64,000 nt of DNA from Adineta vaga (lineage: Eukaryota; Animalia; Rotifera): the NCBI GenBank assembly GCA_021613535.1, contig CP075496.1:3286001-3350000 (forward strand). The letters run 5' to 3'. Shown here piece after piece: positions 34,582 through 53,265 of this stretch; the stretch's first letter is position 1, and every line of letters starts with the position of its first letter. Below the pieces are notes generated by a model. It worked only from the letters and a program-made list of their open reading frames with translations, ran no database searches and had not been told where the DNA came from. The translations under genes and the position numbers were made by a program.

Positions 34582-35539
34582 TATTTGTTTAGTTCGATAG
34601 AATTATTTATACATATATATTTTTTCTTTCTTTCCTCATATATTTTATTACTGTAATATTAAAGCGTCGATTTGTGTATATTATTTCTTAATGTCCGGTG
34701 ACTATATCATTCTTTTTGGGAATAATTTTCTTGTCTTTATGTGTGTGTGTGTGTATGTTATATTTATCATGACAAACAGATCAATAAAATGAATAAATTA
34801 GATTTCAATACCATAGAACATATATCTTATGAATAAAAATGAAAAAAAATTATCTGTTTTATTATTCATTATCAAAGTAAACGATTTCATTCAGTTTAAT
34901 TCTTATCCAAGGAAAGTTTTCACTTGTATCGAATCAATCAATCATTATTCAAAATATCTTTCAATTAGATATCTCTCAAAGCATAATTCTCTATTCAACT
35001 CAATTCAATGAGAAGATTTTAGAAATAAAACAAATAAAATACTAATTCTATCCATGTATAGAATATTCTATTACCAAAACACTTGGTGAAAACTAAACTA
35101 TAAACGTCACAGAATATGTTTTATTTGAATCTTTTTTTTCTCTGACAAATCACAATCTACGTATTTCGTTTGTCTCTGAAAATTATTTGACAAGAATAAG
35201 TGACTTTATACTATCCATTCTGTAAAGAAATTCTACTGTTTTCGTTCATTGTTTATGAACGTATGTGGAACAATAATCACTTTAGACTCTATAACACACA
35301 CACACATGCAAAGTGCGTTGTTATTTCTAAAAATACGTCCACATTGAAAATGCTTTCTTCACTACGAAAGCAAAAGTAAGAAATTCATTTTTTTGTCTCT
35401 ACAGAAACAAAAATTTTCAATTGCTTAAACGTGGTGAATGTTTTAAATACATTAAAACATCAACTCTTTAGATTCTTTGATGAATTGAATATACCAAGAA
35501 CATCAATGATCATTCTACTCGTGTGATGTGCTCCACATT

Positions 35540-36574
35540 ATGATGAATACGTCATCGCTAACTAAACTTGGTACCTTATTTCGATGGATGATTATCTTGT
35601 GTTTTCTATTCTTTATTTGTTATTTATATAAAAATATTCGTATAAATGCAAAAGCTAAATTCGACACCGATATAAGTGGTTATATCACGTTGCCTCATCG
35701 TTTAATAATCAATGAGACAAACGAAAATATCAAGGCTTTATACTATTATAATGTAAACAAAGAACGCAATTCATCCTATCCGTTTATTAGTGGTGATACT
35801 TTTCGTGCTATGGCTGATCATGTGTTAGATGAAATACGAAATGATACTCTTACATCGATCAATTATGGTGATATTATTTTTGTCAAAGGTGATTCGTTTT
35901 ACAAATTTTTCTTTGGACCCTTTCGTTATATCAAAAAGCCATTTGTTCTTGTTTCACATAATAGTGATCGTTCAGCACCGGCCGAGCATCGATCTCGTTT
36001 AAAAGATCATCGAATACTCGCGTGGTACGCTTCAAATCCTGGTTTAAGTAATGTAGAGAAACTATTTCCTATACCAATTGGCTTAGCCAATGCACGTTGG
36101 CCATCAGGAAATGTTAATGAATTTATGTATGCATTTAAAAATTATCGAAAACCTTGGATAAATCGATCCACTTTATTATATGTGAATTTTTCTCCTGATT
36201 CACATCGAGTTGAACGTTCCCATGCTCTAGGAATGGCAAAATCATTTAAAAATGTTCAAATAGTTTCAGGAAGAGTATCTGTTCAGACATATTTACAGCA
36301 ACTTGGAAATGCTAAATTTGTTTTGTCACCACCTGGAAATGGACTTGATTGTCATCGAACATGGGAAGCAATGTTAATGGGCGCTGCGCCAGTCATAATT
36401 ACATCAGGACTAGATCCTTTATTTCAACAAATTCCAGCTGTCGTTTTAGATAATTGGACAAATTTAACAGAAATATATCTATCATCATTTAATTTCCAAT
36501 CGTATGATAATGTTATACCAACTGTTTTATATGCTCGTTATTGGCGTGAAAAACTTCGAAAACATCGCAATTAA
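35540..36574 (+). CDS. Intronless type-II membrane glycosyltransferase, GT47/exostosin-like
   Basis: N-terminal TM anchor. Motifs YPFISGDTFR, LVSHNSD, PIPIGLAN, LLYVNFS, KFVLSPPGNGLDCHRTWEA. No introns in the CDS. Confidence 0.8.
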   Translation: MMNTSSLTKLGTLFRWMIILCFLFFICYLYKNIRINAKAKFDTDISGYITLPHRLIINETNENIKALYYYNVNKERNSSYPFISGDTFRAMADHVLDEIRNDTLTSINYGDIIFVKGDSFYKFFFGPFRYIKKPFVLVSHNSDRSAPAEHRSRLKDHRILAWYASNPGLSNVEKLFPIPIGLANARWPSGNVNEFMYAFKNYRKPWINRSTLLYVNFSPDSHRVERSHALGMAKSFKNVQIVSGRVSVQTYLQQLGNAKFVLSPPGNGLDCHRTWEAMLMGAAPVIITSGLDPLFQQIPAVVLDNWTNLTEIYLSSFNFQSYDNVIPTVLYARYWREKLRKHRN

Positions 36575-37832
36575 TAATACATATGCTTACTTTTATTTTG
36601 TTATAAATATTCTCGAAAATAAAATCCTTTTGATACTATTCAAGGACATTGGTATGCGTTCATGTCAAAAACATCTCTACTTGAGTATTGTTTTAAAAAG
36701 AAACGAAAAGAAAAATCAGTGTGTAAACATCATCTACCATTAGAAAAGTACCTCGATTTTATGATTTAAAATTGTACATATGAATTATCTATTATTCGAG
36801 ATAAATTCAATCATTTTATTCATTTTCTCGAATGTAAATAAAGAAAATACTAGTCTTTCATCGAATACATCGAAAAGAAGAAGTAGGTTTGATTGATTTT
36901 TCTTTCTCTCATAATATGTTTTCAATCGTGAAAATCATTTATTTTTAGCTTCAATGTTGCACTTATAAATTTTCAATGAATCATCTCATATTTAATTCAT
37001 CAAACAAAAAGCATTTATCAAATGTGATTATATTTTGTTTAAATAAATTTCATTATGACTGATTTCATGATATACAAATGAAATTTTGAATAACTTTTAT
37101 TGTTAAAGAGAAAAACAAGTGAAGATTTCCTATGTGTTTCAGTGCACTCTCGATTAATCTTTTCTTTTTTGTATTCAATCTGGTAAAATCTTGTCTATTA
37201 ATTCTATAGAGAATCGATTGATATATATATCCTTGATTGGATATTAAAACTAGAACTTTTGATTATAATAACAAGCAAATAATCAATCGATCGATTTTTC
37301 TTTCCATCTCTCTCTCTCTATATATACACTACCGAATAGTTTTTACCTTCTTCTTTTTTCCTTATATTTTCGCTCAACATTCTTTCCGTATTACTTTTTT
37401 TCTCTTATTTCGTCTGTATTCTTTCTCCAGAGATGACGACGACGACGACGACGACAATAACATTTGACTCCATCCGTACTTAACTCTAGTTTGTTAAGTG
37501 ATTACTTGTTCGTATCGTGTTCTTTTTGTCAGAAATCATTGACAGCAAGTTAAACAACAAGAGCATATCCAGTCATAGATTTTCCTCTGGAAAAAATATT
37601 TCTTTTGCGTACTTATTAACGACAGAGTGATTTTTGTACTAGATATCCCCGTGGAAGCGAAAGAGAGAAAGAGAGAGAGAGAGAAGGAGAAGAAAGAAGA
37701 TGAAAAAGAACGTTTGGATATTAATCGGTGAAGAAATAGGTGTAGACACGTGATATTATTACAGTCGATCAGTAGTTTCGATTGCTGATCTTAGAAATGT
37801 ATGTCAATGGTATTGGCAGGTTCCAATACAGC

Positions 37833-40800
37833 ATGGTGGCCAGCTTGTGTTGGATATTTTTCTTTGTTCCATTTATTCTTCTTGTTGGTAAGAATGATTT
37901 TTAAACTTTCAGAAACAAATATTGTATTATTTGAATATGAACTTAAATTTTTAGATAGTGTTCAATTGGGTAATCCAGCAGCTATTCCTCAGATCTGTTC
38001 CAAGGTAAGTTGTTTTATATTGAAAACAACAATCTAAATTTAATAGTCAAATAAGAATTTGTTATTTTGTACTTTGATCTTATAACGAAATGAATTTGAT
38101 ATATGATTTCAAAACATTCATTCGATACTAACGTGCAAATCCTTAGAGTCTGTTTTAATATCACACATACCAAGGTACGATATTACAATTAATCAATCAT
38201 TACTTGTTCTTCGATACATTGCTTAGTTGAAAACTCCCTATAGTCTTTTCGTATTAATCACATTTCTTATATTAAAAAAAGAACGAAGTTCGAATATTTC
38301 TATGAATACTAATAATCATTATCTAAGATAAAACATCTTTGCTTTTTTAATATGAAAAGAATTTCATATAGATTTGTTCACTGATTATGACAGATGAATA
38401 ATCGTTGTTTTGATCGAAATACATTTGCAGATTTGAAGCACAAAGTTTTAAAACAAATACACCGATATTAAGATTTAAATATTGTAATGAATTGAACAGT
38501 TTTGATTAATAGATGACAAGATATTGAAAGGTAGACTTTCACTAGTACATAATAAAGGAGAAAATGAAGTATGCTTTAGTAAATCTATATCTCTATTTCT
38601 TAAGCTTCAGTCAATGCTTTCTTTTGGCAAATATGAAACATCTCAAATCTCTTCAAATATAACATATGTTCCTCGTATTTATACTCAAAATTTTCTTGCT
38701 TATTCTTCCATTGATGATTTATTATTATTCATTGAACCCAAACATCAAATTCATATATATGATGCTCAAACTGTTCAATTAATTGTGAATATAAGTACAA
38801 CAGATGTTATTATTGCAACATCATGTACTTCACTCATTTCCGAATCTCCACATGAATTATATTTTATTTATGCAAATCATTCTCTAACAAATATAATCAC
38901 TTTACGTGTTTGTCAAGTACGATTTAATATCTATCGATTAGATTTTGATCAAAATTATTGTATTGAACCAATTATTCTTCAATACGATCAACCAAATTTA
39001 CGTATTTATGGTTTTACAATCAAACGTGATCATGCAGGAACAACAAAATCTCTTCTATTTGTATCAACACAAATTGGTTTGATCTATACAATATTTGATA
39101 CAAAAACAGGTGTATTACAAGATACACCATTAGTTTTAAATGAAACATCAAATGAAGGTAGTGTGGTTTTATCTTCATCTGGTTCTATATATTTTGCGAG
39201 TAAACAAGAACATTTAATCTATGAATTACGTGTAACAAATGATTTTCATTTAACTTATGGAAATGTTACTAAAGGAAAAGCCATTAAATCTCCATATGGT
39301 TTAATTACAGATGAATGTCATCATTTGTAAGTACAATTTTATATATAAATATCTAAAATATGTTTATTTCATAGATATATTGCAACACGTTCAACAATAT
39401 TGATTATGTATACGCAAGAATCTGTAACAATACGAAGTGTATTTTCCAAAGCATCAGATTTACCGATTACACTTGAACGACTAAATGCAACAACCTATGT
39501 CTACGCAACAATTAATCAAAAATCAAAGAAATCACAACCGTATTGGATGTTTAATTTCTTATATTTTACTGGTATGTTGAAAGAACGAATATATTTTTGT
39601 TGGTCAAAAATCAATTAAATTTGATTTATACTTAGAACCTGAGAAACATCTTCCACCCACTCGTCATCCTGGTAGGAAATAAAACTGTCTTTTTTGTTGT
39701 TGTTGCTTTTGTTTTTTGTAATGCACATTATGACCTGCTTTAACCATCACCATCCTTCCCTTTGTTGTTATCTATAGTTATTAATCTGGAAGAAATTCCC
39801 GAGATCAATATTACAGAAATCGATAGTATTCATCTTCCAAGACTTTGGCCATTATCATATTCGGTATTATCGATAACGAATATGACGAAAATGTATACAC
39901 AATTTTTTTCAACACCAAGAAAACCGTTTGCATTATTTAAAAAACGAAAAATGAATATCATTCAAACTAATAGCACGTTTGATCAAGAAAATTCATCGTC
40001 TATCGATAGTCATTTCTCGATGTCAACATCATCCGATGAACATTTTGATGAAAATAGTGAAAGCGATGAAGATTTACAACCTGATTATAGCAAAGAATTT
40101 GATTCAATATTAGACCATGAAAATGGCAATGGAACAAAAACTGATTCAATTCAACATATACTTTCCGATTCGAATTCATCTACTCAATCGTTACTATCAG
40201 ATTCTCGTGAAATATACGAAGATCGTGGCACGATAATCGATTCTCATCAATCTTTAATAACGTATGCTAACTATTCCGCAGTTTATGATACCAATGAAAA
40301 CTTATCTTTTCGTGATGATGAATCTTTATTTGATTATTTAATGGAACATCCCGTAGTCGATTTAGAATTTCTTCGTGATACAAATAACATTCATGGATCT
40401 ATACCGTCGAATGATGATTTACGATTATATTTTAAAGATCGAACGAATCTTACCGATGATCAAATCGTACACATAGAAACTTATCTCATTCAACGAATTT
40501 CATCTGATCCAAATCTTGCTTCCAAATATATTACAAGTACTAAAAGGCCAACAATACCGTTACTACATGACAACTCATCATTACCCGAAAACAAACAAAC
40601 AGACAAATATTCTGAAGAACTATCACCATTTGATTTTGATCATTTCAATCATACAATAGCGTCGGAGGATGGTTTATTCTCTTTCGATGAATTGCAATCC
40701 TATTTGCAAGGAAATAGAGATTTATCACCCACCAAACAAGAACATATTGAAGCATATCTAGCTAAAGAGAAACTAACTGATCAAGATAAATTATCTCAAG

Positions 40801-43800
40801 ATTCGGCAAGTACTCCAGTATGGACTGCAGTACGTTTAGTTGATGAAGAGCATATCGAAGCTATACAATTAGAAGAATTATTAAAAAATATACCAGAAAC
40901 TAATTCCGACTATTACAATCTGTCCACTGATTCTGAAGAAATATTAATTTCCAAAGACGATCTACGTTCCTATATACAAGGCGAAGGAATGCTATCGAAA
41001 ACACAAGAAGCACAATTTCGAGCTTATGTCGCTAAACAACAACCGTCTGATCAACATCTGTTTACTAAATACTTAACAACAACAACTACTACTACTACGT
41101 CATCATCATCCGAAACACATATTCAATCACAATTGCCGATAATACATGAGCAAATTCTCGATGAAAATAACAGAGAAAATGACGATGAACATGGTTCAAA
41201 CGAAAAACTACTATTCGAATTTGAAAAATTTAATCGTACCAATGACATAAAGGATGGTTGGTTCACTGCAAATGATTTACAAGCATACCTTCATGGAGAA
41301 GCGAATCTAACAACATCACAACAAGTACAGATTGAACGTTTTCTTGCTAAACAACCAGCTTTCAATCGAAGTTTATTTACCAAACATTCAACAACAACTA
41401 CTACGACAGTAATTCCAATACTAACTACAACATTGCCATCCGATGACAACATAGATGAGAACAATCCAAATGCACATATCGATGTAAATGAAATACTTGG
41501 TAGAATACCTTCGACAGATTCGGAACATTTCAATATTACTATTGGATCAGAAGAGGTATTGATCTCCAAAGACGATCTTCGATCATATTTAGAAGGTAGA
41601 GGAAATTTATCTGAAATTCAACGAAAACAAATCGAAGATTATTTTGCTCAGCAATCCTCTTTCAATCAGGAAACGTCTTCGAATTCTTCGTTAACAATGA
41701 TAATTTCAAATGAATCGTCAACATCCACTGTGCTAACTTATTCATATCGGAAAAAGAAATGATACACAGTCGCAGATTACTCATCCGACTTATTACCATT
41801 ATTACTCGAACATTTCAATCGTTCAACCGAAGCTCAAAAAAACGCCATTACTGCTGATGATTTACGATTATATCTACAAGGAGAAAGAAATCTATCAGAT
41901 TCGAAACAAGAACAAATTAAAGAATATCTGAACAAAGAATTATCTGTTATTCAAAATATGCCTTCGAAATATTCAACTAGCACAGTGGATTCATACGATT
42001 CTATCGATGATAACGGAAAAAATGAAGACAAAGCATTTGATGATTTATTTGAAGAAATATCAGCAACTGACTCACTCTCTTACAACTCCTCCATTACTTC
42101 AGAAGAAATCTCCATTTCAAAAGATAATTTACGATTATATCTACAAGGTCGAGGTAATCTGTCTAAGATTCAGCAAGATCAAATTGAAACTTACTTGGCT
42201 ACACAGTCACCTTCTTACAAAGCACTCTTTTCAAACTATATGGCTAGTACAACACAGCCAACGAAATCATCGACCATTCATATCACACAATCACAACTTC
42301 TACCGCTAATTATTGAACATTTCAATCGAACCACAAACACTCAAAACATCTCGTTTACATTCAATGATCTGCAATCGTATTTAGAAGGAAAAGCAAATCT
42401 ATCCGAATTACAAAAAGAAAACATCAAAGAATATCTCAATCAACAATCATCTCCATTGCAAAATATCATATCTCAATATGCACAAAGTACAAAACAACCA
42501 TCAAGTACTGTAACTTCAATGAAGATTAACGACAAAGAATTGGATGATCTAATTGAGAAGATTCCATTAAGTGATTCTGAAGAAATATTGATAAGCAAAG
42601 ATGATATTCGATCATATTTGGAAGGTGATCGAAGTAACTTATCAAAGAGTCAAGAAGAGAAGATTCAAGTTTATCTAGAAAAACAAATGTCATCTGATAA
42701 GAATATATTTTCTAAATATTTCACCACTACAACAGACGCAACTCACTCATACTATATCTGATACAGAATCAAAGTTTCCAATTGAAAGTGAAGATATCCA
42801 ATCCATTATTGATAGTCCACAAATTCAAGAACATTTACCGGAACTTTTACCTTTGATCTTTGAGCATTTGAATCGTTCAAATGATCCCGAAAATCAGCTT
42901 CCATTTACTGGCGATGATTTGCAATCGTTTCTTCAAGGGCATGGAAATTTATCTATATCCAAAACAGAACAGATCAAAGAATATCTCAATGATAAATCTT
43001 CTCCTCTTCAAAATATTATATCTCAGTATTCAAAAAATAGAACACGTTCATCGACTATTATTCCTACAACTAAAAGCATAGACGCAGGAGACACTGATAA
43101 TGAAGATACAGAATTAGAAAACTTATTACAAAGCATACCGGCGATCAATTCAAATTACTTAAATATTTCTTCAAATACAGAACAAGTACTCATTTTAAAA
43201 GACGATATACGATCGTATCTACAAGGCCACAGAAATCTCTCAAAAATTCAAGAAACACAGATTCAAAATTATTTTGAAAAACAATCACCGTCAGATCAAA
43301 CTATATTTTTCAAATATCTGACAACAACATCTATACCTGCCAATGATAAATTACATGAGACATATCAACAAAAGAATCATTCACTCACTGACAAAACTTA
43401 CGAAGACGATCAACAAGAAAAACTACAACCTTTCAATTTCGGTAGTTCTAATAGCACAGTGACGTCAGAAGAAATGTTATTTTCCTTCGATGAATTGCAG
43501 TCATATCTGCAGGGAAATCGAACCTTTTCACCTGTTAAACAAGCAAACATTCAAACGTATTTAGCTAAACAATCCTCAACTAATCGAAACATCTTATCTC
43601 ATCCATCCATTACAACTCAATCACCTAGTAAAACGAATTCATCTCTTGAGGATATATCTACAGATGATCGAAACAAAGAACTAGAAGAAAAATTTAAAGA
43701 TTTGTTGAGAAAGATACTACAAATTGATCCAGAAGAAAAACTGATCGCCAAAGTTGATCTACTCTCGTTTATCGAAGGACGAAGAAACTTAACGAAAGAT

Positions 43801-46800
43801 CAACAAGCACAACTTCAAGCTTATATAGCGAAAGAATCACCAACCAATCAAGAAACATTTTCTAAATACTTGACAGGTACAACTAAAACACCAAGAATTA
43901 CAACAGTTGGAATAGATAATGATACAGAACATTCTGCAGCGAATGAAGATAGTGAAGATATAGAAGAAGATGAGAAATCAAAAGACATGCCATCGTTAGA
44001 TCTTGAACTACTTAACCGTACAATTGCTGCAGAAAATGGGTCATTCACTCCAAATGATTTGCAAGCATATCTTCAAGGACAAAGTAATCTAACAACAATT
44101 CAACAAATACAAATTAAAGATTTTCTTGTTAAACAACCATCATTCAATCGAAGCGTATTCGTCACACGTTCAACAACTACTCGACTATCAACTACAACAA
44201 AACCATCCGATGCCCACATAGATGATGACAATAAAGATGAAAATATTAGTATCGATGATTTGCTTGACAAAATATCTTCAACTAATTCTGAACATTTCAA
44301 TATTACTACTGGATCAGAAGAGATATTGATATCCAAAGATGATCTTCGATCATATTTAGAAGGTGAAAGAAACTTATCAGAAGTTCAACAAGCGCAAATC
44401 AAAACATATTTAGCAAAACAAGCATCATCTGATCAGCAAATTTTTTCAAAATATTTAACAAGTACTTCAACAAGAAAAGTGCCTTCAAAGCTTGAAGTGA
44501 ATAAAAATTCTGAATCTCATTGGGCATACAACGATTCACTTCAAGATGATACACAAAAGATAGATCATTCTGAAGAAACATTCAACACAGATGGGAAACT
44601 CTTCAATTATACCATCGAATCAGACAAGATGCCGTTCACAGCCAATGAATTAAATTCTTATCTACAGGATCAAGGAAATATATCACTATCTCAACAACAA
44701 AAAATCGAAGATTATCTAGCCAAAAAGAAAACAACGAGTTCTATGGCGGTACCAACAGAAATAACTCCATCAGATAATAATATAGATAATAAACAACCTG
44801 ATGAAGAAATAAATTTAGAAGAAATAATAAATGGATTGTCACAAGTTGATTCATATTCTTTGAACTATTCAAATGATTCAGAACCAATTCTCATTTCAAA
44901 AGATGACCTACGTTCCTATCTACGAGGAAAAGGAAACTTATCAAAGGTACAAGAAACACATATACAAGCATATTTGGCTACGCAATCGCCTTCGAAAGTA
45001 ACTACATCTGTAACACCTCATATAAACATAGAATCGCTGTTTCGAAAAGGTAGAAACAATTCTTCCACTAATAATACTCAAGAAGAAGAAGAATATTCAC
45101 AAAAACTATTACTATCAATTCTCGGAAATTACAATCGTACAACGGATGACGAAATAAAATCGTTCAACATCGATGATTTACGCTCGTATATGCAAGGACA
45201 AGCAAATATATCTTTAGACAAACAAGCACAAATCCGAAGTTATCTAGCTGAACAATTAGCATCCAATGAAAACATACTGTCAGAAACCACAACTGCACCT
45301 ATCCAAATTGCTACATTACTTACAACTGAACAAGATGTTAACAAAGTCGATGATACAAAGTTTCAAGAACTTTTAAATAAGATACCATTAGTTGGATCGC
45401 AATACTTCAACTTCACGACTGATCTAGATGAACCAATATTGATTTCTAAAGACGACGTTCTATCTTATGTTCAGGGACGAAGTAACCTATCAACTAGTCA
45501 AGAACAGCAACTTCAACATTTTCTCTCAAAACTATCCATCGTTGATCAAACATTATTTTCAAACTATATGGCTAGTACAACACAGCCAACGAAATCATCG
45601 ACCATTCATATCACACAATCACAACTTCTACCGTTAATTATTGAACATTTCAATCGGACCACAAACACTCAAAACATCTCGTTTACATTCAATGATCTGC
45701 AATCGTATTTGGAAGGAAAAGCAAATCTATCCGAATTACAAAAAGAAAACATCAAAGAATATCTCAATCAACAATCATCTCCATTGCAAAATATCATATC
45801 TCACTATGCACAAAGTACAAAACAACCATCAAGTACTGTAACTTCAATGAAGATTAACGACAAAGAATTGGATGATCTAATGGAGAAGATTCCATTAAGT
45901 GATTCTGAAGAAATATTGATAAGCAAAGATGATATTCGATCATATTTGGAAGGTGATCGAAGTAATTTATCAAAGAGTCAAGAAGAGAAGATTCAAGTTT
46001 ATCTAGAAAAACAAATGTCATCTGATAAGAATATATTTTCTAAATATTTCACCACTACAACAGACGCAACTCACTCGTCTATATCTGATACAAACATTGA
46101 TTTATCAAATCAAAGAGTAAGAAATCACACGCTTACTAATGATACATCAACACAGACATATTTACCGGAACTTTTACCCATGATTCTCGAACATTTCATT
46201 CTTTCAAATGATACAGATAAGAAACATCTGTTTACGGGCGATGATCTGAAATCATTTCTTCACGGACACGGTAATTTAACACTATCGAAAATTAAACAAA
46301 TCAAAGATTATCTAGCTGATCAGTCAGTTGCAATCCAAAATATTTCTTCTCATTATCTCAAAGGTACAGCAGAATCATTTAACTCTAGTACACCAAATGA
46401 TAAATTACCTGAACACAAACAGACTGAAGAGAAAGCTCTGAGTGACCTTCTGGAGAAGCTTCCTTCCATCGATTTTGAAGACTTAACAATCACAAAAGAT
46501 GATTTACAATCCTATTTACAAGGTCAACGAAATCTATCGAAAGTTCAAGAATACCAAATCGAAGCATATCTTGCCAAACAGTCCTCATCTGATCAAAACT
46601 TATTATCTAAATATATATCATCAGCTACAACTCTGTCAACGACTTCAACATCATCGGTGATAGATAAATCAACACATTCATATAAAGGAAAATCTACTTC
46701 AGGTAGTAAAGATACGCACTCGAATCGTTCTTCGAAAAAAGGACAAATAACTACCGCTGGTTATGCAAAGCCCACAACAGCATTCGAGGAAAGTTTATTC

Positions 46801-49800
46801 TTTTTTGATGACTTGCGAGCCTATCTGCAAGGTCGTCGAAATTTATCTCCGGCTAAAATCGCAGGAATTCAAGCATATCTAGCGAAACAAGCAGCATCTA
46901 ATCAAACTTTGTCATCATCATATTTTACAACTACTCCTGCACCAACTAATATCAGTTCACTGAGTACCAAAATGTCTGACAATGATCTCAGCAAAGATCT
47001 TGAACTTGATGATTTACTAAGAAAAATTCCATTAATTGATTCGAAATATTATAATTTGTCTACTACGTCAGTAGAAGTATTAATTCTTAAAGATGATCTA
47101 CAATCTTATTTAAAAGGTGAAAGAAATCTATCGATAATCCAGGAAACTCAATTTCAAGTGTATTTATCTAAACAACCATTATCAGATCAAAGATTATTTT
47201 CGAATTATTTAACAAAAATCAAAGAATCAGGCGGACGTTCAACAGTTGATATGGATAGAAAATTCGAACTCAACAAAGAAACAAATGGTATAATTACTGA
47301 AGATAAACTAGTTGAGGATGATTCAAAAGAACTTCTACCATTAGATCTTGAATATTTCAATCAAACAGTCGGTTCAGAAGGTATTCTATTTACACTTGAT
47401 GATTTGCAATTATTCTTGCAAGGACGTGGAAATTTAACTCCAGCTCAAATAGAACAAATTCGAGCTTATCTCGCGCAACAGAAAGCATCAAATCGAAGTA
47501 TCTTTTCAAAATATTCGAAGTCACCACATGGTGATTTTGTTACGTCCGATGATGATGCACAGAATGATGAAATGAATCTGGAAGAATTTTTGAAAAAAAT
47601 TTTAATCTATTTAAAAGATCTCAATATTTCCAGTGATGCAGAAAAGGCATTATTTTCTATCAATAATATACGAGCTTATTTACAAGGTCGCTTAAATCTG
47701 TCGAAGAGTGATGAAACCAAGATGCAATCAACATTAAATAAATATTCATCGTTAGGTAACAGCACGCTCAACACATCGAACACAACCCTTTCTTTTGCAC
47801 AGCATTCGCGTTTATGGTCACCTTTTTCTCGTTCAAAAGAGAATTCGAGTACTAGTACTAGATCATCAAAATCTCTTTCTGAAATAGATAAAACAAAAAC
47901 ATCAACGACGACGACAACGACAACAACATCATCCTGGGAGAAAAGTTCGATTGATCCGAAACTAACAATAACATCTTCAGATATTACTGAATCATCATCA
48001 TCTAAGTTGTCGACAGCAAAAAAAACAAATACATTCATAACATCAGAAATGCCTCGAGTATCATCGACAACTGCACAATTTGATATATCTTCATTAAGAT
48101 CTGATTATCCACAATCGAAATCAACAATTACTTCGATACTTTTTGACTTCACCAAAAAACAAACATTCCAACAAGAACTCGATCAATCTACTCCTAAATC
48201 GTCAGATGCTCATCTTACATCATCACACTTTAGATCAAGTGAGATATCTACTAGTACTACTACGCTTTCTCCTACAATTACTCCATATTCAACAACACTA
48301 GTAGTACCAGCAGATCATCATTACATCCAATTGTCACTAGTTCTTACAGAGATAATCTGAAACCTTACAGTTATTATCCATTGCCTTCAACTCCTTCGCC
48401 ATGGTTGACTGACAGATATCAATACGGTTTTACACCTGAACGACCTTCCTTTGATTCTACTTCAACACTTTTTCCTTATTTTGATGCATGGAGAACATCA
48501 TCAACATACGCTCCACCTTCATTTGATCAACATGAAGCATTTACTACAACAACTCGTCGATTTCGAAGTCGAAAACAGAAGATTATTCGTTGGCAAACTC
48601 AATCATCATTGAGTACCAGTACTATTACATCATCTACGACGATGACATCCTCATTCGAAACAACTACAAATTCAAGTATACCATACGAAACTTTCTTAAA
48701 TGTCGTGTTACTTTCCTTCTTTTTTACTTTTTAGATTATATTTCAACATCAACGATATCAGTCGCACCATGGTATTCTTCTGATCAACAACAGACAATAG
48801 TTATCAAACCACCATCAAATCAAAAGGATTCCAATACCTCCTTCTCAAATGATCTTCTCAATCAGATATTACAAAATATTTCGAGTTCATCCAATTCATC
48901 TGTAGATAAATCAATATTTGTTGATCTAATCGATTGTCCATCATCATCCTGGAATCTTTCATTCAAATCAAATGAAAGTTTTACACTTGATGTTGCTCTA
49001 CCATCACCCATTGATCCTTTAAACTCTACCACAATAACCAATTTAACATTTACAACAATCGAAGCCGAACGTTTTTCTACGAATATCATGGGTAAATCAG
49101 TACATTTCCGCGTTGATCGTGTCCATGCAAAAGAATTCTATTTAAAAATGAATGATACAGATAAGAGAAATAGATCAGCCCATGGAACTCCACATCTATC
49201 CGATGTCGTTATTGGTCATGTAACAAGTGAACAATTTCATTTGAATTTAAGTCAATCCGATAAAGTACATGTACATGTTCAACAAGTTGATACTGCAACA
49301 GCAGAACTGTATCTTGATAGTAATTTTTGTACGAATGATAGTAGTCTAGAAATCAATTTAAATCTTTCTAAGAACGGTAAGCAAATTTCTATGTTGCTAT
49401 CATCTGTATATCTATTTTGTTTTATTCTCGATTTTATCAAGGAACAATTCATTATGGTAATCAAACACCTATTCATATAGGACCAGTTTTTACTCGAGTA
49501 TATATGCCGAAACAATCCTGTGATCGTGATCAACCATTAACATTATTTTTTGATATATGCGAACGACAAAATCCTTGTTCGAATGATGGTACATGCATAC
49601 CTCTTATGCCTGATTATAATGATACATCTTATTCTCCAACGGAAACAGGACATATTGGTTATAAATGTAATTGTCCATTACATACAACTGGTGAACATTG
49701 TCAAATTCTCGAATATCCATTAGGTTATTGTTTGAATGGTGGTACTTTCTTTCAAATCTATGATAGATTTAATCAATCGATTGAAAAATGTCTCTGTGCA

Positions 49801-50355
49801 GCTGATTTTTATGGAGCATTCTGTGAAGAATATATTGATAATTGTATTGGAGTATCGTGTTCCAATCATGGCATATGTTTAGATGATATAGAAACATACA
49901 AATGTGCATGTTTTGATGGATTTTATGGCGCTGCATGTGAACGAAAACGAATGCAAACAGTTATTTTACAAGCCGCATCTCGATCATTTGGTATCATTGC
50001 CATACTATTAATTGGTATAATTGCTTGTTTAGTTGTAGCAAGTGATATACATACATATGCAATACGTAGGCAACAACGAAGAAATTTATTGAGTAAATTT
50101 CCTCGTGTTACATCGGAAATCTTAGAAAATTCTGTACTTTTACTCGGATTTGGTGATGCTCCAATTGAAATGAATGAACTATCAAAAATGCGTATTATAC
50201 GACGAGGTAAAAGACCGAAATATCGATCAGCAAAAAGAACAGTACGAATACGAAAAACAACAGGTAATCTTCCAATTGCAAAGAGAAAACTACCATCAAA
50301 ATTTTCGGAAGAACCTCAACTTCTATCAATTCGATCGACTGAAAATAATATTTAA
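37833..50355 (+). CDS. Giant type-I membrane protein: signal peptide, propeller-like domain, 27 novel helical repeats with S/T linkers, beta-rich domain, 3 EGF, TM, basic tail; frame disrupted at three sites in this sequence
   Basis: Signal exon MVASLCWIFFFVPFILLV from ATG 37833. Further exons at ~37955-38004, ~38605-39326, 39375-39571, 39636-39671, giant exon 39778-48675, 48735-49376 and 49442-50355. EGF cysteine patterns, TM FGIIAILLIGIIACLVVA. Confidence 0.75.
42228..42748 (+). repeat. 521-bp near-identical duplicate, copy 1
   Basis: Matches 45556-46076 with about 6 substitutions seen by eye. Confidence 0.92.
45556..46076 (+). repeat. 521-bp near-identical duplicate, copy 2
   Basis: Matches 42228-42748 at an offset of 3328 bp. 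Confidence 0.92.
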
Positions 50356-51630: not shown

Positions 51631-53265
51631 TTACAAACAACGACTTATTTCTTCGGTAGTAACACAATTTTGACATTGAACATAACAACACCATTGAAAT
51701 CGACAATTGCATTGATCTCGTACGGTGACAATTTGAGATTGATAACCACGATTGCAACAAAGTAAATCACAACCATCAATAGCACGTGAATTTCGATTAC
51801 AAACACGTCCAATTGTTCCAAACGAACCTAATTCTATATTTCTTTCACAATAATTTGGACTTGAATTATAGAAAATCAGATCATTTTTGTACGTTGTAGT
51901 TATTGATACAGGTTGTTTTGTCATTTGATAAGGAAGATTTCGTGGAACAAAACGTAATTTTTTATCAAAAAGATTTCGTTGTAGACGTACTTCAATGGAT
52001 TGATCATAGTATTCTTTTAGTTGTTTAGCTATTTGAGTAAATGATCGAAGTGAACGCCAACATGTCTTAAATTCACATGAACCTGAAACGCCATGACATT
52101 TACATTGTCGATCAACTGATTCGAGAATCATCTAAACAACAACAACAAAACAAATGAGTCTTCTAACAAAACAAATTCAAAGTCTTTACTCGAATGCCAA
52201 CTTGATTATTATGAACATTTAATAAACTAGTTCGATTTTTTGTAACTCGTTCTCTAAGATTAACAAATTTTCTTGCTAATTCTGATCCAAATAAAACATT
52301 ATCAGAACATCCAGCCCAACGAATCGAATTATTCGTTGCTTTCTCTTTCATTGACATATCACATCCGCATGAACTCAATCGTCCTGTACTACATGCTTTT
52401 GTTATCGTATAAGCAATACCAGCCGATGTTAATGCATGGATATATGCTGATTCTTTTGTTCCTAGAAGAAGTTTTCTTATTAGAAAACGCGAGAGAAAGA
52501 GAGAGCAATGAAGTAAACATACCTGAATCAAGAACATTTCCAATTAATTTTTGATCTTGAAATAATGTACAATTCCAATGTCGATTTTTGAATTGATTTT
52601 TACATTCTTCTAAGGCTAAATTCGCGCCAAAACGAATAAATGGCATAATCGCTTCATTTCTTTGACAGAATCGTATTTGTCGATAACTCAGTCCATATTT
52701 CATATGACAAAGACCTTGTGTTGCAAATGAAATATCCGAAACTTGAATAATTGGACTAAAACAAAGAAAAAAAAGCGTTCACATCTGTTCACTTGACCTT
52801 GAAGATTTTTATGACATATTTGTCCAAGTTCGAAATTTTATGATCAATAAACATTTCGATTATTTTCGAATGTAAATAAAAGATATATTTGAAATGATAA
52901 CCACATGCTGTTTAAATGTTTGTTTTACCCACATACAGAGAGAGAGAGATCATTGATCTTTTCTTTTGATAGATGTCTTGTGAACGTGCTTGAATGTTTC
53001 CTATTCTTCTTTTTCTATGTATCATGCATGTCGAAATGCATACAGATGAGTTTCGTATTTATTTTTGTGACGTTCATTACGTCATTTCGATTCTCGCAGA
53101 ACAAATTATATGTGAGGAATTAATGATGCGTATCTGATCGAATTTAGACATTTGAAAAAAAGAAAACAAACGAAGATAGATCAATGATAATACTTACAGC
53201 CATTGTTCAGTTGAATTGATTAATACAATGAAAAATAACAGTGAAAGATTCTTCTTCGTCATCAT
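51631..53265 (-). CDS. WNT4: Wnt ligand, most similar to Wnt4; 4 exons
   Basis: Signal exon MMTKKNLSLLFFIVLINSTEQWL, ECKNQFKNRHWNC, GTKESAYIHALTSAG, WAGCSDN, HNN, CKCHGVSGSC (lipidated Ser), RFVPRN, AIDGCDLLCC, CNCRFQWCCYVQC. Subfamily assigned from remembered motifs. Confidence 0.85.

Follow-up and report, generated by a model that had tools for sequence, protein, structure and literature searches.

In a stretch of 64,000 nucleotides from the bdelloid rotifer Adineta vaga (GenBank assembly GCA_021613535.1, contig CP075496.1, forward-strand positions 3,286,001 to 3,350,000; called the window here and used for all coordinates, with a G+C content of ~30%), we have identified one expressed gene of eight exons, which runs on the + strand from an ATG at 37797 to a stop codon at 50355 and contains 27 tandem copies of a module of about 70 residues. 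Its product is probably a type I membrane glycoprotein of ~3,850 residues that crosses the membrane once and is specific to bdelloids, and in it the array of modules would serve as a glycosylated spacer stalk; the anatomy by itself can be held with considerably more confidence than this reading as a whole. The predicted protein begins with a signal peptide, after which come a head of ~300 residues, propeller-like in character, and an acidic spacer; the 27 alpha/beta beads then sit on disordered linkers rich in Ser, Thr, and Asp. Closer to the membrane, a mucin-like stretch and a beta-rich domain would precede the three EGF-like domains, the membrane helix, and a basic tail that is conserved.

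Exon structure and reading frame of the giant gene

Contigs from the runs X1, X2, and X9 (three studies) and from the run X7 were compared with the window. We read X1, X2, and X9 as RNA and X7 as DNA, because the former show GT..AG joints and no coverage of the 600-base intron at 38005-38604, which X7 does cover. The 5′ part of the gene is spliced at the joints listed in Table 1, and the array is transcribed, with RNA contigs lying on it at 40382-40549, 41152-41306, 42228-42765, 42735-43408, and 43348-43799. The phases and frames are mutually consistent across the exons. The N-terminus given by exon 1 is also annotated in Adineta ricciae (P0038) and Rotaria socialis (P0042); this hydrophobic, signal-type sequence is therefore conserved in three species, is joined to the gene by RNA, and is predicted to act as a signal peptide. 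An ATG at 37801 (open reading frame (ORF) 37801-38037) was rejected as the start, since its frame does not continue into exon 3 and the conserved start lies four bases upstream.

An earlier note on this stretch had placed the gene at 37833-50355 and had proposed one exon of ~8.9 kb and a protein well over 3,500 residues if intact. The stop codon was correct, but 37833 is the second in-frame Met, and the conserved start is at 37797. The long exon is real; its acceptor is fixed by RNA, while its donor (GTATAC at 48676, with the frame carrying on into exon 7) was placed from the structure of the A. ricciae gene and the frame. The predicted length also held, in that the long form comes to ~3,851 residues when the frame breaks described below are resolved as in the other data.

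As assembled, exon 6 is not one open frame and contains three small breaks. At the first, which includes an in-frame TGA, contigs of the DNA run X7 have three insertions, AACT after 41732 and a single A after each of 41750 and 41773 (net +6), and thus show no stop. At the second, the base 42751 is missing from the copy-1-specific contigs (start 42735) of both X7 (DNA) and X9 (RNA). For the third, our protein search found no public protein that bridges it. Short introns were considered as the cause of these breaks and rejected, as no GT..AG pair of fitting length and phase is present near 41760 or 42751 and there is no gap at 48316-48321; an alternative genetic code was also rejected, because TGA serves as an ordinary stop at the end of the giant gene and of the other ORFs. 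Outside the three breaks, indeed, the 8.9 kb of AT-rich sequence (30% G+C) is free of stops. The breaks are hence most likely defects of the assembly or private to a haplotype rather than the true state of the gene.

Table 1. Exons and other features of the giant gene (window coordinates)
Feature	Position	Strand	Evidence
Exon 1: start codon and predicted signal peptide with a hydrophobic core of ~16 residues	37797..37887	+	RNA joint 37887>37955 (X1, X9); frame continuous with exon 3
Exon 2	37955..38004	+	X1 and X9 RNA contigs with GT..AG joints 37887>37955 and 38004>38605
Exon 3: bulk of the propeller-like head	38605..39326	+	81.5% identity to A. ricciae residues 1-303
Exon 4: last part of the head	39375..39571	+	Joints 39326>39375 (X2, X9) and 39571>39636 (X9)
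Exon 5: donor with two alternative acceptors	39636..39671	+	Joint 39671>39778 (X2); X9 joins 47888
Exon 6, 8,898 bases: acidic spacer, modules, Ser/Thr-rich stretch, basic motif	39778..48675	+	RNA acceptor; A. ricciae homologue is one 8.6-kb exon
Exon 7: beta-rich juxtamembrane domain, ~215 residues	48735..49376	+	65% identity to A. ricciae
Exon 8: EGF region, membrane helix, basic cytoplasmic tail, stop	49442..50355	+	Pfam EGF; 78% identity to A. ricciae
Module array	40320..47787	+	Motif scan, A/B profiles, whole-genome profile search, hhalign
Core starts (D-D-L-R-S-Y-L-Q-G-type), modules 1-14	40413, 40686, 40956, 41271, 41571, 41856, 42123, 42363, 42600, 42913, 43201, 43489, 43753, 44053	+	
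Core starts, modules 15-27	44338, 44644, 44902, 45172, 45451, 45691, 45928, 46240, 46498, 46807, 47092, 47398, 47662	+	
Frame-disturbed stretch in the linker before module 6, in-frame TGA at 41760-41762	41733..41773	+	Translation
Duplicated segment (modules 8-9)	42218..42760	+	98% DNA identity to 45547-46090 (modules 20-21)
Extra frame-shifting base in the linker between modules 9 and 10	42751..42751	+	Comparison with twin copy at ~46075
Mucin-like stretch, 45% Ser+Thr	47788..48315	+	Composition
Candidate alternative acceptor inside exon 6: AG at 47886-47887, exon starting with 47888	47886..47888	+	One X9 RNA contig
Third frame change	48316..48321	+	A. ricciae homology switches frame; no room for an intron
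Conserved polybasic motif R-R-F-R-S-R-K-Q-K-I-I-R-W	48555..48602	+	Present in long orthologues

The module array and the domains around it

By motif scan and translation, the array was resolved into 14 modules of type A and 13 of type B, each of ~70-73 residues. Hidden Markov models (HMMs) for A and B, which were built from the odd- and even-numbered copies, respectively, sort the A. vaga modules into the order A, B, ..., A with 0 exceptions and with margins of 11-59 bits. When a profile made from an alignment of 116 modules was searched against the whole A. vaga genome (100.8 Mb, six contigs), exactly 27 matches were hit (E = 1e-15 to 1e-30), every one of them at this locus, and such clustering at a single locus is far beyond chance. 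The 27 modules in strict A/B order described by the earlier note are therefore confirmed for A. vaga. In the same genome, no second locus was found for the 1,835-residue array ORF. Tandem Repeats Finder, furthermore, detects no tandem array at the DNA level in the 40.3-47.8 kb region, because the copies are too diverged; the repeat is detectable only at the protein level.

Comparison of the A profile with the B profile in hhalign gave a probability of 99.7% (E = 2.7e-26, 70 columns), with the alignment spanning the whole length, while the mean pairwise identity among the A. vaga modules is 41% for A-A, 35% for B-B, and 29% for A-B. Because of this whole-length profile match, A and B are best regarded as two subtypes of one domain of ~70 residues, not as two unrelated modules. 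The domain can be recognized by the signature [DN]-[DE]-L-x-[SA]-[YF]-L-x-G-x-x-N-L-[ST]-x-x-Q, and this signature, the ~70-residue profile, and an arrangement in tandem copies within a head-EGF-membrane protein together define a new bdelloid module family, to which the 27 copies in the window belong. As had been noticed before, most modules carry sequons for N-glycosylation: N-x-S/T in the hairpin is present in 21 of the 27 modules and N-L-S/T in the loop preceding helix 3 in 25, with a total of 60 sequons inside the modules. The linkers are rich in Ser+Thr (31%) and acidic (Asp+Glu, 17%), again in line with the earlier description, and the number of cysteines in the array is 0.

A single module modeled with AlphaFold from the 116-sequence alignment (predicted local distance difference test (pLDDT) 77.9, predicted template modeling score (pTM) 0.66) has a predicted alpha/beta topology, namely a helix at residues 3-10, a beta-hairpin at 17-22/25-30, and three helices at 31-39, 46-62, and 64-71. 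In the model of an A-B-A piece (pTM 0.28), the modules reached a pLDDT of 70-81, the linkers stayed below 50, and no contacts were predicted between modules. The earlier picture of beads on a flexible Ser/Thr-rich string thus finds support, with AlphaFold pLDDT values of 70-88 for modules overall. The beads had been called helical, which is not supported by the alpha/beta model, and paired, which is not supported either, as no A-B contacts are predicted and alternation is not kept in Adineta steineri and Rotaria. The conserved columns of the module comprise the hydrophobic core, helix caps, and the two sequons, and no conserved cluster of Cys, His, charged, or pocket-like residues was seen.

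We then asked whether the module belongs to a described family. The searches used single exons, with the deposited A. ricciae orthologue P0022 as the full-length stand-in. A Pfam scan of the ORFs and of 116 single modules gave no match above cut-off for the module, which the earlier note had not recognized as a described domain. The helical bundle domain HBD (PF18534) recurred below threshold, with a best score of 27.4 bits for a whole ORF against the gathering cut-off of 32.9, which no single stretch reached; it matched 13 of the 116 single modules (best E = 0.003) over profile positions 33-63 of 84 only, and its profile found nothing relevant in the whole A. vaga genome. HBD was rejected on account of this sub-threshold score and partial coverage. 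EF-hand_7 scored 15.6 bits (cut-off 30; E = 0.021) and was also rejected, since the predicted structure shows a beta-hairpin but lacks paired loops, and no EF-hand protein was among the structural neighbors. A SEA domain was sought in every piece and in the 116 single modules without any match, and the predicted topology of the bead differs from it. The best hit of a sequence-profile search in the PDB had an E value of only 0.055, a feature search of the ESM Atlas with the A-B-A piece gave no usable match, and searches for structural neighbors of the module model gave no fold match indicating a binding family.

In an exhaustive HMMER scan of 1.84 billion representative proteins with the module profile, furthermore, 21 proteins were hit at E <= 0.001 and 15 at E <= 1e-10, and every named protein at the latter level comes from Adineta (A. 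steineri, A. ricciae) or Rotaria. The weak non-rotifer matches (P0015, P0017-P0021) are multi-haem cytochromes, lectin-fold proteins, and helix-repeat proteins aligned over ~20 profile positions and were rejected as relatives. A literature search found no paper on this protein. On these profile searches the module is an undescribed domain that matches no described family; its fold may also be new, as far as so small and moderately confident a model can show.

Outside the array, an N-terminal head had been anticipated and is indeed encoded by exons 3 and 4; Pfam gives it a weak PD40 match and no NHL match, and its language-model neighbors are NHL-repeat clusters (score 0.93, 171 shared features), which we take as a lead only. 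The polybasic motif downstream of the array is shared by A. ricciae and the distant orthologue P0030, whereas the short paralogue P0048 described below has none; cleavage of a convertase type, for processing or shedding of the protein, may occur here. For the juxtamembrane beta-rich domain, neither a Pfam nor a PDB sequence match was found, nor a SEA domain. The EGF family (PF00008) is matched in two stretches with 32.1 bits against a cut-off of 21.5, and the 17 Cys residues at 49519-49941 are consistent with about three EGF-like units. A membrane helix of 19 residues is predicted at 49984-50040 (mean Kyte-Doolittle value 2.94) and is followed by the basic tail. In this tail, we noticed that the motif L-L-L-G-F-G-D-A-P-I-E-M-N (50100-50180) is nearly identical in the array-less paralogue, which suggests a conserved intracellular partner or sorting signal.

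Orthologues, an array-less paralogue, and an array-skipping transcript

Full-length, collinear orthologues of 2,803-3,738 residues were found in A. ricciae, A. steineri, Rotaria sordida, R. socialis, and Rotaria magnacalcarata, where the databases label them only as “unnamed protein product” or “EGF-like domain-containing protein.” Their architecture is collinear from the signal peptide to the cytoplasmic tail. The copy number across species, which the earlier note had wished to see compared, is 13-28; the strict order of the array does not extend beyond A. vaga and A. ricciae. In A. ricciae (P0022, 3,705 residues, UniRef100_A0A815DD69; P0038 is a further entry), the gene has the same intron positions and a single 8.6-kb array exon. 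Identity between A. vaga and A. ricciae amounts to 81.5% in the head, 78% in the exon for EGF, membrane helix, and tail, 65% in the juxtamembrane domain, 59% in the modules, and 38% in the linkers. Most of the A. vaga modules find their best A. ricciae match at the collinear position, and positional orthologues are 55-77% identical as compared with 35-58% for the best paralogue within the array. The array is therefore old, and its beads have been retained one by one.

Strict alternation was seen only in A. vaga and A. ricciae (the latter minus one B); in A. steineri there are runs of seven A modules, and the modules of Rotaria show no clean division into A and B. Since alternation is not kept in these species and related blocks in A. 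vaga lie at even offsets (modules 2/12, 4/14, 5/15, and 8-9/20-21), it would seem to have followed from duplications of even numbers of modules, not from a functional requirement.

Several side observations concern variation in the array. Blocks 8-9 and 20-21 share 98-99% identity in A. vaga and 93% in A. ricciae (P0022 residues ~1134-1394 and ~2150-2410) but ~58% between the species; high identity within and low identity between species would fit ongoing gene conversion between distant blocks of one exon in both lineages. One X9 RNA contig drops 267 bases (89 codons, in frame) at 41859-42127, between the cores of modules 6 and 7, with 22 shared letters; the ends of this gap have no splice sites, and it could be a deletion allele formed by unequal exchange or a template switch of the reverse transcriptase. 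Another X9 contig has a 21-base in-frame insertion at 42268 or at the twin site near 45597. Its loose upstream end matches the end of module 19, and the contig is therefore assigned to the second copy of the duplicated block; the insertion resembles a linker indel polymorphism.

A. vaga also has an array-less paralogue, I4U23_002888 (P0048; 1,176 residues), which is encoded on the minus strand of contig 1 at 9019378-9024608 with 100% identity. It is 50% identical to the giant protein in the head and 49% over the beta-rich domain, the three EGF-like domains, the membrane helix, and the tail; its middle is Ser/Thr-rich, and a profile search found no modules in it. Rotaria species have short array-less equivalents of 1,355-1,373 residues, and a module suspected in the short paralogue P0047 was rejected as a single biased 13-bit match. 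Because the array-less paralogue shares the head and the C-terminal part and Rotaria has both kinds, these comparisons show the array as an addition to one of two duplicated genes, made before Adineta and Rotaria split.

A form without the array may also arise from the giant gene itself. One X9 RNA contig passes through the joints 39326>39375 and 39571>39636 and then continues from 39671 with 29 letters identical to 47888-47916. The skipped 8.2 kb starts with GT and ends with AG, the acceptor at 47888 has the same phase as that at 39778, and the joint 39671>47888 is in frame and removes the whole array; the sequence flanking this acceptor is conserved in A. ricciae. The same donor would thus give the long form when joined to 39778 and an array-less form of ~1,146 residues when joined to 47888. 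We regard this array-skipping form as a lead, not as an established isoform. It resembles the array-less paralogue on another chromosome: the size of P0048 matches that of the predicted form, but P0048 is without the polybasic motif.

As for the surroundings of the gene, the upstream neighbor (35528-36571, + strand) is an RXYLT1/GT47-like glycosyltransferase gene (27.3 bits against a cut-off of 27), and the downstream neighbor (51631-52128, − strand) is a wnt gene. Both recur beside the orthologues in other bdelloid assemblies, where the array ORF is followed by the EGF ORF and then by wnt on the opposite strand. In the assembly ERZ26165376 of the European Nucleotide Archive, two array loci (L009 and L010) with the same neighbors lie on two contigs and have 17 and 15 modules; one of them is a homogeneous array with an 80-residue period, and the pair may be retained duplicates in another bdelloid.

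Function of the array and likeness to known surface proteins

In the reading that we favor, the array would be a long spacer with heavy N- and O-glycosylation, composed of small rigid beads on extended glycosylated linkers; the stalk would place the head well away from the cell surface, at some hundreds of nanometers as we infer, and add to the sugar coat. A spacer is favored because no cluster resembling a pocket is seen in the modules, O-glycosylation acceptors abound in the disordered linkers, the copy number is variable, and the array can apparently be omitted. The conserved membrane helix and the tail with its 78% conservation argue for a cell-anchored receptor or glycocalyx protein, not a secreted glue.

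Several points weigh against this reading. The modules are individually conserved between species and could bind something, not only fill space. The confidence of the module model is only moderate (pLDDT 78), and the propeller fold of the head comes from a language-model lead and a weak Pfam match, not from a model. In the gene structure, the 3′ joins 48675>48735 and 49376>49442 were placed from homology, the A. ricciae gene structure, and phase; the third frame break (~48316-48321) was likewise placed by homology to A. ricciae; and the array-skipping joint is a single low-depth contig from one run.

The main rival to a spacer is a multivalent binding array, in which the modules would bind glycans, matrix, microbes, or a partner and the protein would be a receptor for adhesion or capture, in line with the adhesion role suggested by the earlier note. 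Bead arrays of other giant surface proteins often bind ligands, and both the excess of positional orthology (55-77%) over the best within-array paralogue (35-58%) and the better conservation of modules than of linkers (59% versus 38%) would be consistent with binding. The conserved columns, however, are those of core, helix caps, and sequons with no pocket-like Cys, His, or charged cluster, no fold match to a binding family emerged, species differ in copy number between 13 and 28, and the array is missing altogether from one RNA form; binding as the main role is hence rather unlikely. Still less probable is a recently broken pseudogene or null allele in A. vaga, in which the stop and both frameshifts would be genuine, with functional orthologues only in other species. 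Such a state would account for the three separate frame breaks in the assembly, for the public ORF-level product P0001 from the same chromosome, which covers only 1,628 residues, and for the finding of no full-length A. vaga protein among proteins of 2,000-6,500 residues; nonetheless, the base at 42751 is missing from both DNA and RNA contigs, the TGA stretch is open in the DNA run X7, and the locus is transcribed and correctly spliced, with no other stops in 8.9 kb of AT-rich sequence.

It is very improbable, in our view, that the module belongs in diverged form to a described family, be it EF-hand-like, HBD, or the SEA domain of membrane mucins. The sub-threshold HBD matches (27.4 against 32.9 bits; 13 of 116 modules, best E = 0.003) and the EF-hand_7 match at E = 0.021 could be counted in its favor, as could a resemblance, by eye, of the segment between the second hairpin strand and helix 3 to the exiting helix of an EF-hand; the grounds on which all three families were rejected are given above. 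The last alternative, a division of the locus into separate adjoining genes for head exons, array, and EGF-membrane part, is largely refuted and now hardly credible. While the assembly splits the region into several ORFs and the 3′ joins come from homology and phase, RNA joints tie exons 1-5 to the array exon, the annotated orthologues run from head to tail in one protein and are collinear through the EGF and membrane part, the exon phases fit, and the paralogue P0048 holds head and tail together in one protein of 1,176 residues. The single gene of the earlier note is thus retained.

The spacer reading can be extended to a bolder proposal, which we regard as rather doubtful: the module would be a new fold and domain family born in bdelloids inside one of two duplicated receptor genes, and the giant exon would be a regulated “telescopic” switch, in which the choice between the acceptors 39778 and 47888 sets a form of ~3,850 residues reaching hundreds of nanometers against one of ~1,150 residues near the membrane, for example in desiccation, feeding, or defense. 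Whatever the role of the array, a domain family absent from Pfam, without a structural neighbor, and confined to one bdelloid gene lineage would offer a clear example of a folded domain that was born within a lineage and expanded to 13-28 copies. A paralogue with the array, a paralogue without it, and possibly an isoform that removes it also provide a natural comparison, which asks what a bead stalk adds to a receptor. The finding opens no long-standing question; for annotation, it means that the locus should be treated as one gene broken by three small frame defects, not as several genes.

Giant glycosylated surface proteins of the bead-on-string type are a known kind. Among membrane-tethered mucins, MUC16 and its like are giant single-pass glycoproteins with a short tail, in which small folded alpha/beta domains alternate with Ser/Thr-rich glycosylated linkers, and EGF-like domains adjoin the membrane in MUC13 and MUC17. 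The rotifer protein is likewise giant and single-pass, alternates beads with Ser/Thr linkers, and has EGF-like domains near the membrane, the comparison by sequence being through Pfam; a signal peptide, a single C-terminal membrane helix, and a tail are all predicted from its sequence. It differs from MUC16, however, in that no SEA domain occurs either near the membrane or as the bead, which is half the size and has no cysteine, and in its N-terminal propeller-like head and confinement to bdelloids. As for the long Pro/Thr/Ser-rich, O-glycosylated regions of mucins, Ser+Thr amounts to 31% in the linkers and 45% in the stretch at 47788-48315 but proline to only ~5%, and O-glycosylation is a prediction only. 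Ebh (FIVAR-GA) and SasG (G5-E) of Staphylococcus aureus are giant rod adhesins in which two alternating module types are packed into a rigid rod, and the rotifer protein resembles them in its long stalk, its strict alternation of two types, and a terminal head held far from the cell. Unlike Ebh and SasG, to which it has no relation in sequence or fold, it is the product of an animal gene with introns, and its models show disordered linkers with no contacts between modules.

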